Origin: Macrostomum lignano
Taxonomy: Eukaryota
Assembly (NCBI GenBank): GCA_002269645.1
Contig: NIVC01000157.1
Location: 186,001 to 250,000 of the forward strand
Length of the DNA stretch: 64,000 nucleotides
Direction of reading: 5' to 3'
Shown: positions 54,301 through 60,300 of the stretch, one piece after another
Layout: every line of letters begins with the position of its first letter
Numbering within the stretch: position 1 is the stretch's first letter
The notes under the pieces: generated by a model
What the model was told of the DNA's origin: nothing
The model's database searches: none
Seen by the model: the letters and a program-made list of their open reading frames with translations, nothing else
Translations under genes and position numbers: made by a program

Positions 54301-57300
54301 ATCCAGCTACCTTGCCTCAGATATCAGCATCCCACGTGAGCTTTGACATCTCAGCAACCCAGCCTTGACATCTCAGCAACCCAGCCTTGACATCTCAACA
54401 ATCCCCCCGTAAGCCTTGACATCTCAGCAAACCCCAGTGAGCCTTTACATCTCAGCAATCTCCCCGTTAGCCTTGACATCTCAGCAATCCCCCCGTTAGC
54501 CTTGACATCTCAGCAATCCCCCAGTAAGTCTTGACATCTCAGCAATCCCCCAGTAAGTCTTGACATCTCAGCAATTCCCCCAGTAAGACTTGACATCTCA
54601 GCAATACCCCCAGTAAGCCTTGACATCTCAGCAATTCCCTGTAAGCCTTGACATCTCAGCAATCCCCCAGTTAGCCTTGACATCTCAGCAATCCCCCAGT
54701 AAGCCTTGACATCTCAGCAATTCCCCCAGTAAGACTTGACATCTCAGCAATTCCCCCAGTAAGACTTGACATCTCAGCAATCTCCCCGTTAGCCTTGACA
54801 TCTCAGCAATCCCCCCGTTAGCCTTGACATCTCAGCAATCCCCCAGTAAGTCTTGACATCTCAGCAATCCCCCAGTAAGTCTTGACATCTCAGCAATTCC
54901 CCCAGTAAGACTTGACATCTCAGCAATACCCCCAGTAAGCCTTGACATCTCAGCAATTCCCTGTAAGCCTTGACATCTCAGCAATCCCCCAGTTAGCCTT
55001 GACATCTCAGCAATCCCCCAGTAAGCCTTGACATCTCAGCAATTCCCCCAGTAAGACTTGACATCTCAGCAATTCCCCCAGTAAGACTTGACATCTCAGC
55101 AATCCCCCAGTAAGACTTGACATCTCAGAGATCCCCCAGTAAGACTTGACATCTCAGCAATTCCCCCAGTAAGACTTGACATCTCAGCAATTCCCCCAGT
55201 AAGACTTGACATCTCAGCAATCCCCCAGTAAGCCTTGACATCTCAGAAATCCCCCAGTAAGCCTTGACGCAATTCTCCCTAAGAGTCACACTAGTATAGA
55301 CATTCCCCCTGAACCTGGATATCCCAGAAATTTCCCATTGAGTCTTAATATTTTAGCGATTCCTCAATCAATATTTTATGTTCGACAATACGCTTATTTC
55401 ATGGTTTTGTATTTTTAAATTGTACATTGTTGCGTACACAAGTCTATTTTTGAGGATTGGTTTAAATTGTTAATTGACTTACGAAAGTCAATAAGCGCTG
55501 GTGCGCGAGTATTGGTGCGAGAATAAGGCTAAGTGTTGATGATTCGTAACAAGCGTACAGTCATTGACAGTTGCAGTCAACTAGAGTAAGCGATGTGCGA
55601 GGCTCAGCGCTGCCTCAAAGAGAGAAGAGAGCTGAGAGCTGAGAATATTGCTATTGTGAAGTTTCAAAAGACCCGAGGGGCGGATACGGCGGATAGAGAG
55701 GCTTCGCGGGCACATGAGTTTGCCGACCCCCTTGCATATAGAAGAGTTTTTATTTTTATATGTAGAGATTAGCATTAATTGAATACGTTTTTTGCTGTGC
55801 ATTTCTTATACACCATACTGACCACTGAGCATAGTTAGGTATGAGAATTCGTGGTGTAAAACACTAAGAGTATATTGAGGTATATTGAAAGCGGGTATGA
55901 GATGCAAGAACAAGGATGAAGACATTATTCGCTATACTAAAATGGTTTGTCTCTATAGGTAGGTACTCGTAGGTATTTATGGGATTGATGTCATAAAAAA
56001 ATCAGAAATTTTCCAGTGATGAATTGCTATGATTTAAAGGTTCATTTGGAAAAATGCTGAGATATCAAGACTTATGGGGAATTGCTGAGATGCCAAGGGT
56101 CAATTGGAAGTTGTTTGGGGGGGGGGGCATCACAAACTCGAAGAATCACAACTCCGAAAGGCGCTTTCCAGCATAACTCCGAAATATCATAACTCCGAAA
56201 TATCATAACTCCAAAAGTTCTAGCCATGTCCAACACTATTTTGGTTTTCGGAGTTATGATATTTCGGAGTTATGATATTTCGTGTTTATGATATTTCGTG
56301 TTTATGATGGGCCCTGCTAGTAATTTTTGAGTTATGATATTTCGGGTTTATGATATTTCGGGTTTATGATATTTCGGGTTTATGATATTTCGGGTTTATG
56401 ATATTTCGGGTTTATGATATTTCGGATTTATGATAGGAAGTGCTTTCGGAGCTGTGATTTTTCGGGTTTACCATGGCGACCCCCATTGTAATTACTAGCT
56501 ATAGCGACTGTACAAGGCCGGAAGCTACACGTAGTTAATTAAAAAGTTGTCGATTTTTTGTTGCCTCCAAGAAAGGAGGGCATTGATTGCTAGTACGCCA
56601 TGAGTCTGACTCAGTCCTACCTTGCTATTCACTGACAGGTGCGACACCGACTCAAAATGCGGTGTGGATTTATAAAAGACCAGGGTTGGCGAGACCCACC
56701 ATTCGGGGGCACCCATACTACGCAAGTCACTGTAGATGAAATCGTTAACTATATTTATGCGCAGGAGCCAAGTGCTCACTTTGCTGAAATAATGGCAAAA
56801 CTACAAGACACACTGAATCTGAATCTGGTTCCCTGTGGGGATCAGGACTACTATTCTGTAAATCTAAGCAGAAGTTACCGGATGCTTCTCAGACCTGTGC
56901 AACTGAGGGACGGCAGCACCTACGTGTGCATGGAGATTTACCGACGCACGCACGAGTACGGACCGACGCACGATAAGAACAAAATATTTCTCAACAAATC
57001 TTTACCAGAAAGAGCCGAGAAGAATTTCCCGGAAATATTTCGAGGTAGTCCGCAAGAACAGCAACCGTCAGCAGGTTCTTCACGCGAGCAGAGAAAGCGA
57101 CCGTCGCCGGCTAAATCCGGCCGCCAAGAAGCCGCCAAGAAACCTAAAAAGAACTGATGAGCCAAACTCTGACATAAATTCATTTTATATAGTTTATTCT
57201 TAGGTGAAATGTATTTTAATTATATATTTCCTTGCTCAGTATCTATCTCTACTGTTTTAGCTACTCATAGTTTTGCTTTTTTCCTCTATTAGTGCACGTA

Positions 57301-60300
57301 GATTTCAATAAAATTTTCCATGCACTTCTTCCTTTTTATCAGCTTAAATAACTATTAACAACTTTTAATTACTACAAAAATATTTTTATCACAAAATCAG
57401 TTACACATCAGTTAACATCTCCAGAATATTTCTCTTGTCCTGCTGGCAGGCTATCAATCATTTTGTTTTATCAGAAAACAATTCACTGCAAATACGTACT
57501 AGTTGAACTCATAAATTGGGCATTGAGTTGAGTTTGGTAAGTTAGTTACTAACAGGGATTCAAGCTTGGAATGGAATGGTGCTTGTTCACTGTCAGGCTT
57601 AAGTGTACTTCATGTGTAATTTGTGTTGTAATGTCTTTGACTGTTGTGCAATTGTATGTACTGATTTTTATTTTAAATTTCTTAAACATATTTCTAAAAC
57701 ATTCTGCAATGTCTCAGATTCTACTGAGTCACTCAGCATCCCAGATTCACTGAGTCTCTCAGAGTCACTCAGCATCCCAGATTCACTGAGTCAGTCAGTC
57801 AGTCACTCAGCATCCCAGATTCACTGAGTCTCTCAGAGTCACTCAGCATCCCAGATTCACTGAGTCAGTCAGTCAGTCACTCAGCATCCCAGATTCACTG
57901 AGTCTCTCAGAGTCACTCAGCATCCCAGATTCACTGAGTCTCTCAGTCACTCAGCATCCCAGATTCACTGAGTCTATCAGTCACTCAGCATCCCAGATTC
58001 ACTGAGTCTCTCAGTCACTCAGCATCCCAGATTCACTGAGTCTCTTAGTCACTCAGCATCCCAGATTCACTGAGACTATCAGTCACTCAGCATCCCAGAT
58101 TCACTGAGTCTCTCAGAGTCACTCAGCATCCCAGATTCACTCAGACTATCAGTCACTCAGCATCCCAGATTCACTGAGTCTCTCAGTCACTCAGCATCCC
58201 AGATTCACTGAGTCTGTCAGTCACTCAGCATCCCAGATTCACTGAGTCTCTTAGTCACTCAGCATCCCAGATTCACTGAGACTATCAGTCACTCAGCATC
58301 CCAGATTCACTGAGTCTCTCAGAGTCACTCAGCATCCCAGATTCACTCAGACTATCAGTCACTCAGCATCCCAGATTCACTGAGTCTGTCAGTCACTCAG
58401 CATCCCAGATTCACTGAGTCTCTCAGAGTCACTCAGCATCCCAGATTCACTGAGGCTCAGTCACTCAGCATCCCAAATTCACTGAGTCCCTTAGTCACTC
58501 AGCATCCCAGATTCACTGAGTCTCTCAGAGTCACTCAGCATCCCAGATTCACTGAGGCTCAGTCACTCAGCATCCCAGATTCACTGAGTCCCTTAGTCAC
58601 TCAGCATCCCAGATTCACTGAGGCTCAGTCACTCAGCATCCCAGATTCACTGAGTCCCTTAGTCACTCAGCATCCCAGATTCACTGAGACTATCAGTCAC
58701 TCAGCATCCCAGATTCACTGAGGCTCAGTCACTCAGCATCCCAGATTCACTGAGTCCCTTAGTCACTCAGCATCCCAGATTCACTGAGTCTCTCAGAGTC
58801 ACTCAGCATCCCAGATTCACTGAGGCTCAGTCACTCAGCATCCCAGATTCACTGAGTCCCTTAGTCACTCAGCATCCCAGATTCACTGAGTCTCTCAGAG
58901 TCACTCAGCATCCCAGATTCACTGAGGCTCAGTCACTCAGCATCTTTTGTTGTTTTAGATCGACCTCTCCCAAGTAGACGAAGACATCGACTGGTGGTCG
59001 AAGTACTACGCCTCCACGGGAGACCTCAGCAAGTGCCGCAAGTACGTGGACATGGGCTACGACACCATGAAGGTGTACACGACCTCGTTGGAGAGCGCCG
59101 AGTCGTTCCACGGTTTCAACGACTTCTGCGACACCTTCGGCTTCGTGCGGGGCAAAAATCTTGACGACGAGGAGGGCAACATCGTCGGCGAGTTCAAAGG
59201 CTCGTTCAGGATCTACCCGCTGCCGGACGACTTCGGCGCCCCCATGCCGCTGCGGCAGCTGGGCAAAGGCAGGATGGACTCGAGCCCGGTGGACTGCACC
59301 GTCCGCCTGTACGTCATCAAGTCCTTCGATCTGCAGCCTAACGACCCGAGCGGGCTGGCCGATCCGTACGTTGAAATCGAACTGGGCAAGCGAAAGATGG
59401 ACAGCAAGGACAAGTACATCCCGAATACTCTGAACCCCGTGTTTGGACAGTGAGTGCCGGCCTGATTGGCTCAAGTAGCTTTGCTCTTATTTACGGTTCA
59501 CGAATGATGAAGCGCTGATCCTCAAATTGCTGATCCTCAAATCCCTGATCCCAAAATCCCAGATCCTCAAATCCCTGATCCTCAAATCTCTGATCCTCAA
59601 ATCTCTGATCCTTAAATCTCTGATCCTTAAATCCCTGATCATTAAATCTGTGATCTTCAAATCCCTGATTCTTAAATCTCTGATCCTCAAATCCCTGATC
59701 CTCAAATCTCTAATCCTCAGATCCCTGATCCTCAAATCTCTGATCCTCAAATCTCTGATCCTCAAATCTCTGATTCTCAAATCCCTGATTCTCAAATCTC
59801 TGATCCTCAAATACCTGATCATTAAATCTCTGATCCTTAAATACCTGATCCTCAAATCTCTGATCCTCAAATCTCCGATCCTCAAGTCCCTGATCATTAA
59901 ATCTGTGATCTTAAAATCCCTGATTCTTAAATCTCTGATCCTCAAATCTCTGATCCTTAAATCTCCGATCCTCAAGTCCCTGATCATTAAATCTGTGATC
60001 TTATAATCCCTGATTCTTAAATCTCTGATCCTCAAATCTCTGATCCTCAAATCTCTGATCCTCAAATCCCTAATCCTCAGATCCCTGATACTCAAATCCC
60101 TGTTCCTCACATTCCTGATCATCAAATCTCTGATCCTCAAATCTCTGATCCTCAAATCCGTGATCTTCAAATCCCTGATCCTCAAATCTCTGATCCTCAA
60201 ATCTCCAATCCTCAAATCCCTGATCCTCAAATCTCTGATCCTCAAATACCTGATCATTAAATCTCTGATCCTTAAATCCCTGATCCTCAAATCTCCAATC

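Follow-up and report, generated by a model that had tools for sequence, protein, structure and literature searches.

Does the short open-reading frame (ORF) that lies between two exons of a ferlin gene in Macrostomum lignano encode a protein, and if so, of what kind? The locus is on contig NIVC01000157.1 (assembly GCA_002269645.1), of which we analysed positions 186,001 to 250,000 on the forward strand (64,000 nucleotides, hereafter the window, numbered from its first letter). An earlier note, made from the letters of the window, had described a compact, intronless gene of unknown function on the sense strand, between ferlin exons and beside the end of a repeat element, and this description is borne out by our analysis. 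We find that positions 56657–57157 (+ strand) are a real protein-coding gene, restricted to Macrostomum as far as the searched collections reach, and that the gene is already on record in GenBank as a hypothetical protein; new here are a lead to its fold, a corrected start codon, its nesting in two copies of the locus and the pattern of divergence between them. The reading that we favour, which we hold as an evenly balanced judgement, is that of a 166-amino-acid (aa) gene in a ferlin intron, confined to Macrostomum, that joins a predicted RelE/ParE-like domain to a basic tail and evolves fast within a divergent island.

The nested gene and its start codon

Pfam domains C2, FerI, FerA, DysF (Pex24p) and dsrm_Ferlin are found in + strand exons from ~31.3 to 63.9 kb, which places a ferlin gene across the latter half of the window. 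Exons of this host gene stand on either side of the ORF and on the same strand, so the gene is nested. The features that define it are as follows.

50358–50834, + strand: upstream flanking ferlin exon (C2 domain), acceptor cag/G, donor CAG/GTAAAG, ending after codon base 1
56596–56656, + strand: conserved leader, 80–93% identical to the second copy of the locus (L001, see below), with an upstream ORF (uORF) at 56600–56635 and the candidate acceptor ACTGACAG/G
56657–57157, + strand: the nested gene's likely coding sequence (CDS), comprising 166 codons and a TGA stop, directly followed by another TGA (57158–57160); assigned from the open frame and from the match to the start and C-terminus of a homologue
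56671–56678, + strand: TATAAAAG, the TATA box of the earlier note, inside the CDS (codons 5–8)
56792–56794, + strand: the ATG taken as the start in the earlier note, here the codon of an internal residue, Met46, within helix 2 of the predicted domain
57158–57330, + strand: AT-rich 3′ untranslated region (GC 0.30) with AATAAA at 57307–57312, which together with its surroundings is 93% conserved in L001
58959–59449, + strand: flanking ferlin exon on the downstream side, carrying the motif DIDWWSKYY and the beginning of a C2 domain, acceptor ttttag/A, donor ACA/GTGAGT

Each of the letters quoted in the note was found in its place: TATAAAAG at 56671–56678, CTAG at 56590–56593, ATG at 56792–56794, a 121-codon frame running from that ATG to 57154, TGA TGA at 57155–57160, and AATAAA at 57307–57312, this last also being present in L001. 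The frame that is open from stop to stop is longer than the 121 codons proposed, however, covering 173 codons (56636–57154), and it holds an ATG at 56657 in the context caaaATG. We favour this upstream ATG because Met1 of the homologue aligns there, because a transcript begun at the initiator-like site proposed earlier (56701) would bear two out-of-frame ATGs (56736 and 56757) ahead of 56792, and because residues 1–45 supply a strand and most of two helices to the predicted domain, the full-length model being the more confident one. Translation probably starts at ATG 56657 and gives a 166-aa product. A promoter and start built on a TATA box, an initiator and a 'Kozak ATG' find no support, all three being internal to the likely CDS, and the same goes for the 121-aa product, which omits residues 1–45. 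Between the AG at 56637–56638 and ATG 56657 there is a 1-nucleotide (nt) indel relative to L001, so this part of the leader is non-coding and the frame common to both copies exists only downstream of it, a fourth argument for the start at 56657. The corrected model (start 56657, 166 aa) is needed by annotators of this genome.

The length of the ORF by itself is not beyond chance, as first-order Markov simulations gave 0.66 ORFs this long per 64 kb with the composition of the window and 0.09 with the local composition; the comparative evidence presented below is beyond chance. The ORF has a GC content of 0.49, an observed/expected CpG ratio of 1.05 and a GC content at third codon positions (GC3) of 0.49, its 3′ flank has a GC content of 0.30 and a CpG ratio of 0.15, and the ferlin exons have 0.58–0.63, 0.70–1.15 and a GC3 of 0.70–0.87. 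In exact look-ups, the 121-aa and the 166-aa products were both absent from the records.

The flanking ferlin exons do not match in phase: the upstream one ends at 50834 in phase 1 and the downstream one starts at 58959 in phase 0, so the 8-kb interval 50834–58959 must contain at least one small exon, of length 2 mod 3. We looked for this small exon between the two and did not find it. One candidate at 53966–54022, with a good acceptor and the donor AGG/GTAAGT, was rejected for its wrong length class and an in-frame stop; L001 carries a 17-nt indel at this place. Most ferlin introns are filled by minisatellites (57727–58944, 59515–60680, 50864–51486 and 51754–53088, with units of 34, 15, 29 and 20 nt), of which the 34-nt array stops 14 nt before the acceptor of exon 58959. 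The lengths of these arrays differ between the window and L001.

A single homologue in a second copy of the locus

Scanning 1.84 billion representative proteins with HMMER returned one true match (E 3e-35), the M. lignano hypothetical protein PAA81775.1 (P0002; BOX15_Mlig000471g5, UniRef A0A267G6V4, 149 aa). Its Met1 aligned to Met7 of the query, which is ATG 56657, the C-terminus is common to both proteins and both end in RQEAAKK.KKN followed by a stop. The two share 51–57% amino-acid identity, and PAA81775.1 is without 17 tail residues relative to the window protein. It is encoded at 10001–10450 of a second locus (L001, on NIVC01000513.1 of the same assembly), between the same ferlin exons as the window ORF, and its locus also keeps the conserved leader and the AATAAA. 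The ferlin exons around it share 92–100% amino-acid identity with those of the window, and the two flanking exons are identical in amino acids (100%) to L001 5290–5802 (exon 50358–50834) and 12071–12562 (exon 58959–59449). The annotation of this assembly was made from genome-guided RNA-seq transcripts, split wherever trans-splice or poly(A) sites had been mapped by experiment, and non-coding and repeat-overlapping transcripts were dropped from it (PMC5730564). Since the annotation was built from RNA-seq transcripts, PAA81775.1 is transcribed. In the literature collection searched, Mlig000471 is mentioned in no paper.

The locus L001 is itself composite. Its first 2504 positions hold the last part of another ferlin gene (exon for the membrane anchor at 577–867, end of the CDS at 2504), and 2.5 kb past that end there follows a second copy of the ferlin 3′ half (4984–20450), which begins in the intron before the equivalent of the window exon at 50358 and whose exons are annotated merely as an 88-aa product. 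On this arrangement, L001 from 4984 onwards looks like a partial downstream tandem duplicate of the ferlin 3′ half, relative to which the window copy may be the upstream unit, a homeologue or an allele.

No other relatives emerged. Three bacterial repeat proteins in the HMMER output (P0003–P0005, E 9e-9 to 4e-4, 3–8 stretches each) were set aside as sums of weak matches with no Pfam support. A word-indexed protein search gave no match with the ORF alone and only PAA81775.1 with the two-sequence profile, having missed it with the single-sequence query despite common exact 9-residue words. As a control, a conserved ferlin exon returned a single metagenomic match from this index, which is nearly blind to animal proteins, and because this control nearly failed, an absence of homologues from the word index means little. 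Scans of viral, metagenome and prokaryote genome collections with back-translated patterns found no relatives, and tblastn against plasmids (E up to 10) gave only an irrelevant NADAR match. The viral or rolling-circle origin that had been suggested for the gene is not supported, as no relative turned up in the viral, metagenome and prokaryote collections.

Divergence between the two copies

Outside the satellites, the window and L001 are 97–100% identical over most of their unique DNA, introns and exons alike, save for one island that contains both the repeat element and the ORF. The identity profiles gave the following.

50070–50770: 100% identity to L001
53090–53700: about 99% identity
53810–57330: divergent island, 30–88% identity to L001 9150–10620, containing the repeat element and the ORF
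57429–57728: 95–100% identity
58945–59515: 98–99% identity

In the ferlin exons, the proportions of synonymous (pS) and non-synonymous (pN) differences between the copies are 0.05 and 0.005, and in the ORF they are 0.235 and 0.248, with a ratio of non-synonymous to synonymous rates (dN/dS) of 1.07 at 75.5% nucleotide identity (24.5% divergence). Conservation along the ORF is a mosaic, in which 30-nt windows fall to 50–58% in places and reach 90–100% elsewhere. Neither copy of the ORF has a stop, a state in which only 0.4–1% of neutral simulations remain, and its indels (net 6, 3 and 48 nt) are all multiples of three, those in the leader and flanks being of 1, 2, 4, 7, 16, 17 and 20 nt. The frame is therefore maintained, as no stops and only in-frame indels have arisen despite 24.5% divergence. 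Comparison of dN/dS between copies, one of the checks proposed at the outset, gave a ratio of about 1, yet the frame is open and its indels are in-frame only. From these two sequences we conclude that selection keeps the reading frame, most of the protein surface being at liberty or under pressure to change. The mosaic within the ORF could likewise come from exchange with unseen paralogues. In our proposed mechanism, the copies would owe their extreme divergence to evolution of a conflict or diversifying type, or to exchange with paralogues that were not seen here, and not to decay. As for the island as a whole, gene conversion of the flanks, overwriting from a third copy and long-kept divergent alleles are possible origins. 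Whatever the fold of the protein, the locus is a natural experiment, in which copies of ~15 kb are 97–100% identical save for a 3.5-kb island with a half-changed but open ORF, and divergence of this pattern is in most cases associated with genetic conflict, balancing selection or ectopic exchange.

A predicted RelE/ParE-like domain

AlphaFold2, run at full length on the two-sequence alignment, predicted residues 20–99 with local confidence (pLDDT) of 78–87 and a global score (pTM) of 0.54. The predicted elements are a strand (2–5), two helices (20–34 and 42–53) and four strands (57–60, 65–69, 74–82 and 88–96), which reproduces the RelE/ParE arrangement of helices before a 3–5-stranded antiparallel sheet within ~85–100 residues. 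The protein is accordingly divided as follows.

56657–56956, + strand: predicted alpha/beta domain, residues 1–100, of RelE/ParE-like topology (AlphaFold2, Foldseek and a weak Pfam ParE_like match)
56957–57154, + strand: predicted disordered basic tail, residues 101–166 (pLDDT 31–41), the last ~55 nt of which are 96–100% identical to L001

A Foldseek search of the PDB with this model filled ~30 of the top 40 places with HigB, YoeB/ParE, YafQ, RelK or HP0894. The best toxin match was HigB (E 0.013, probability 0.97, target-normalised template modelling (TM) score 0.55), and the list also held the A. tumefaciens YoeB/ParE toxin, YafQ, M. tuberculosis RelK, YoeB and H. pylori HP0894, the target-normalised TM scores of the RelE/ParE-type matches being 0.5–0.55. 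Among Pfam families, ParE_like (PF24732) matched 18 residues (62–79, strands 2–3) of the window protein only, at E 0.03 and with 14.5–15.1 bits against a cut-off of 24.4. The 121-aa form was modelled with a mean pLDDT of 53 and gave inconsistent Foldseek matches. Alignment with hhalign to E. coli RelE, YoeB, YafQ and HigB (K-12 loci) gave no signal above 34 control proteins; the four true toxins, however, barely find one another (probability 0.1–16%), and because true members go undetected too, this negative carries no weight.

The earlier note had seen in the spacing of residues a likeness to PC4/Sub1, and had proposed a Foldseek search with a predicted structure. That search led to RelE/ParE toxins and not to PC4, for which there was no Pfam match (E up to 10), no PDB sequence match and no entry in the Foldseek top 50 with either model; in the predicted topology the helices precede the sheet, as they do in RelE/ParE toxins. 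The viral fold library BFVD gave nothing consistent. On the strength of the models, we lean slightly towards an alpha/beta domain like those of the RelE/ParE superfamily for residues 1–100, with a disordered, basic tail behind it that resembles a nuclear localisation signal (NLS). The tail has a bipartite-NLS-like pattern, RKR-x12-KKPKK (57092–57151), of which the homologue keeps just the terminal KK.KK.

RelE/ParE-type toxins carry catalytic residues near the end of the sheet, RelE-type members cleaving RNA and ParE-type members poisoning gyrase. The best-conserved block of the nested gene, residues 74–100 (strands 3–4 and YRR.HE), would correspond to this active-site region, and on this ground we propose, tentatively and as a rather doubtful analogy with HigB, RelE and YoeB, that the domain might bind and perhaps cleave RNA.

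Several observations weigh against our favoured reading of a fast-evolving RelE/ParE-like gene. The family consists of just two sequences, the AlphaFold model was built on an alignment of these two, and the basis for expression concerns the L001 copy rather than that of the window. No Foldseek match to the PDB reached E 0.001 or better, the best being 0.013; no RelE/ParE family profile scored above threshold in Pfam, NCBIfam, PADLOC or PHROGs, there was no PDB sequence match, and PAA81775.1 gives no ParE_like match. No partner or antitoxin ORF of at least 30 aa is conserved in both copies of the island, barring frames that overlap the gene. A dN/dS of 1.07, with the differences spread evenly over the three codon positions, is also expected of unconstrained sequence, and the GC3 of 0.49, against 0.70–0.87 in the ferlin exons, speaks of poor codon adaptation. 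In residues 74–100, synonymous sites are conserved as well (pS 0.01), and for that reason constraint on the protein is not proven there and recent exchange is possible. Lastly, the candidate acceptor in the leader fits the published motif at only four of its five specified positions (see below).

The strongest competitor, though clearly the less likely account, accepts a real Macrostomum orphan gene and takes the RelE/ParE resemblance for an artefact of running AlphaFold on a thin alignment; the product would then be a fast-evolving small nuclear or secreted protein of an unrelated or new fold, for example one related to reproduction or immunity. Foldseek values of 0.013 or worse, sequence-level support that nowhere passes a threshold, a dN/dS of about 1, a family confined to one genus and an average pLDDT of 53–59 over the five full-length AlphaFold models all suit it well. 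It fits less well with the dominance of one superfamily at the top of the Foldseek list at nearly full-length target coverage, with a strand-helix-helix-four-strands topology predicted at a pLDDT of about 80, and with the sole Pfam hint, weak as it is, being to a ParE-like family on the matching strands; moreover, bona fide RelE, YafQ and HigB miss each other by sequence, so the missing similarity is expected.

If the fold holds, this would be one of few instances in which an animal nuclear gene encodes a toxin fold of the RelE/ParE type, here with eukaryotic processing signals, an NLS-like tail and no antitoxin neighbour, and the questions it raises would be the role of such a domain in a metazoan cell and the route by which it arrived. 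The fullest version of our favoured reading, in which an animal nuclear genome keeps a rapidly diversifying gene of the RelE/ParE fold, possibly taken up in the distant past from a bacterium or phage and by now past recognition from its sequence, which may be selfish (of the toxin-antidote kind) or defensive, is expressed from a host intron and persists as two copies with half of their residues different in a highly divergent island of otherwise near-identical duplicated ferlin segments, is a speculative extension that we regard as unlikely.

Leader, possible trans-splicing and polyadenylation

The conserved leader contains a candidate splice or trans-splice acceptor, ACTGACAG/G (56631–56639), with its AG at 56637–56638, 18 nt before the ATG, and this too is conserved in L001. 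The trans-splice acceptor motif of M. lignano has been published as [T/C]TNCAG (PMC8629364), spliced-leader (SL) trans-splicing affects 30–39% of its genes, and multi-gene precursor transcripts are common (PMC5730564, PMC8629364). For the mRNA of the nested gene we envisage one of two sources, a promoter upstream of 56657 or SL trans-splicing at AG 56637–56638 of a longer sense precursor, possibly the ferlin pre-mRNA; polyadenylation would follow the AATAAA at 57307. Because a conserved leader with an acceptor near the published motif occurs in a species where trans-splicing is common, release by SL trans-splicing at 56637–56638 rather than from a promoter of its own is a reasonable proposal, one that we consider quite possible but somewhat short of an even chance.

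Three further observations concern the leader. The uORF at 56600–56635 has 11 codons (ATG...TGA) and is kept in L001 as ATG...TAA; trans-splicing at 56638 would remove it. The published SL ends in ATG; once joined to the leader, this ATG would share the reading frame of the ORF in the window but not in L001. A search of the window for the SL sequence and with Rfam gave no match.

The adjacent repeat element and the remaining alternatives

The upstream neighbour of the gene, and the other occupant of the island, is a repeat element.

54158–56595: non-autonomous repeat element (2.4 kb) with imperfect inverted-repeat arms at 54158–54269 and 56489–56595 (107–112 nt)

Satellite arrays with units of 29 and 16 nt fill it, and a shorter, diverged version stands at the same place in L001. 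Its right end had been described as Helitron-like, and the letters do fit: a hairpin CCTCC-N6-GGAGG (56564–56579) is followed by CTAG (56590–56593) and then T, which resembles a Helitron 3′ end, where CTRR follows a GC-rich hairpin and precedes a host T. Beyond the letters the identification is not supported, since the CTAG end is the right arm of an inverted repeat of ~110 nt that pairs with 54158–54269, contrary to the lack of long terminal inverted repeats in Helitrons, and no Rep or helicase ORF is found among the long ORFs of the window. The long inverted repeat and the missing Rep/helicase ORF argue for an element of the TIR/MITE type (terminal inverted repeat/miniature inverted-repeat transposable element) or, at most, a non-autonomous one derived from Helentrons. 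Within it, arrays of 16-nt units at 56172–56216 and 56246–56435 face each other in a near-perfect palindrome (29 nt at 100%, 45 nt at 91%), which could form a large hairpin or cruciform beside the nested gene.

An improbable alternative sees the ORF as carried by, or left over from, a mobile or convertible 3.5-kb cassette, the divergent island together with its inverted-repeat and satellite element, whose two copies would each have been replaced from a different family member at other sites of the genome. In keeping with it, the start of the ORF is 62 nt from the right arm of the element, the island covers both within flanks that are 97–100% identical, conservation within the ORF is a mosaic, and its composition is unlike that of the intron and the host exons. 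Against this, neither the window nor L001 contains a further copy of the ORF, only a single annotated relative was found among 15 billion proteins (the word index being weak for animal proteins), the ORF lies outside the inverted repeats with no transposase, Rep or helicase nearby, and the M. lignano annotation, which lists that relative, excluded transcripts overlapping annotated repeats (PMC5730564).

Still less probable is a chance ORF or a decaying pseudogene without function. The expectation of 0.66 such ORFs per 64 kb from composition, the dN/dS of 1.07 with equal change across codon positions and the poor codon bias are all in keeping with it. It leaves unexplained why both copies are open with a common start and stop (0.4–1% under neutrality) and have taken only in-frame indels, why a relative is annotated from transcripts, why the predicted domain is structured, and why GC and CpG differ so sharply from the flanks.

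We regard as very improbable the model of the earlier note (a 121-aa, PC4/Sub1-like viral or Helitron protein with its TATA box at 56671) and its variant, an alternative terminal exon of ferlin, since, although the TATA, initiator-like and AATAAA letters exist, the tail is basic, the hairpin and CTAG/T at 56564–56594 resemble a Helitron 3′ end and no stop interrupts the frame downstream of the AG at 56638, the conserved start is 56657 and out-of-frame ATGs (56736, 56757) precede 56792, Pfam, PDB and Foldseek hold no PC4 match and no viral relatives appeared, the CTAG end is an inverted-repeat arm, and the upstream exon, which ends in phase 1, would if spliced to 56639 continue in a different frame with a stop after ~33 codons, any common upstream frame in L001 being broken by the 1-nt indel before the ATG.

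Other features of the window

Beyond the ferlin gene, the window contains a Groucho/TLE co-repressor gene on the − strand (3288–16542), with the TLE_N Q domain at 16141–16542 and WD40 repeats at 3288–5123, the introns of which hold long minisatellite arrays. A degraded pol remnant of a long terminal repeat (LTR) retrotransposon lies at 23045–24472 (− strand), where RNase H, integrase zinc-binding and integrase core domains fall in three reading frames, which amounts to at least two frame changes.

Comparison with known systems

The RelE/ParE toxins (HigB, RelE, YoeB, YafQ and ParE) resemble the predicted domain in the topology and size of residues 1–100 and in a conserved block with basic and aromatic residues and a His at the end of the sheet. 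They differ in that the gene described here is an animal nuclear gene nested in an intron with a eukaryotic poly(A) signal, bears an extra 66-residue basic tail, shows no significant sequence similarity and has no adjacent antitoxin-like ORF. Txp40, an insecticidal toxin of Xenorhabdus nematophila (PDB 7xbj), was the second-best Foldseek match (probability 0.99 over 96 columns), but it has 296 residues and the match is partial, with a target-normalised TM score of 0.20. With PC4/Sub1, the nested gene product shares small size, a beta-rich core and a basic region, whereas its predicted helices and strands follow one another in a different order and no search returned PC4.

In its setting, the gene is comparable to the nested and operon-like SL units of M. 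lignano, having sense orientation within a host gene, a candidate acceptor and its own poly(A) signal, although the operons described in this species are of tandem genes and not of genes nested in introns. In its evolution, it may be set beside the toxin-antidote selfish elements of Caenorhabditis, which reside in hyper-divergent haplotypes. The protein family is another one and there is no antidote candidate here, but by analogy the likeness would lie in a small, lineage-restricted gene with a toxin-like predicted fold, held within a sharply bounded divergent island.

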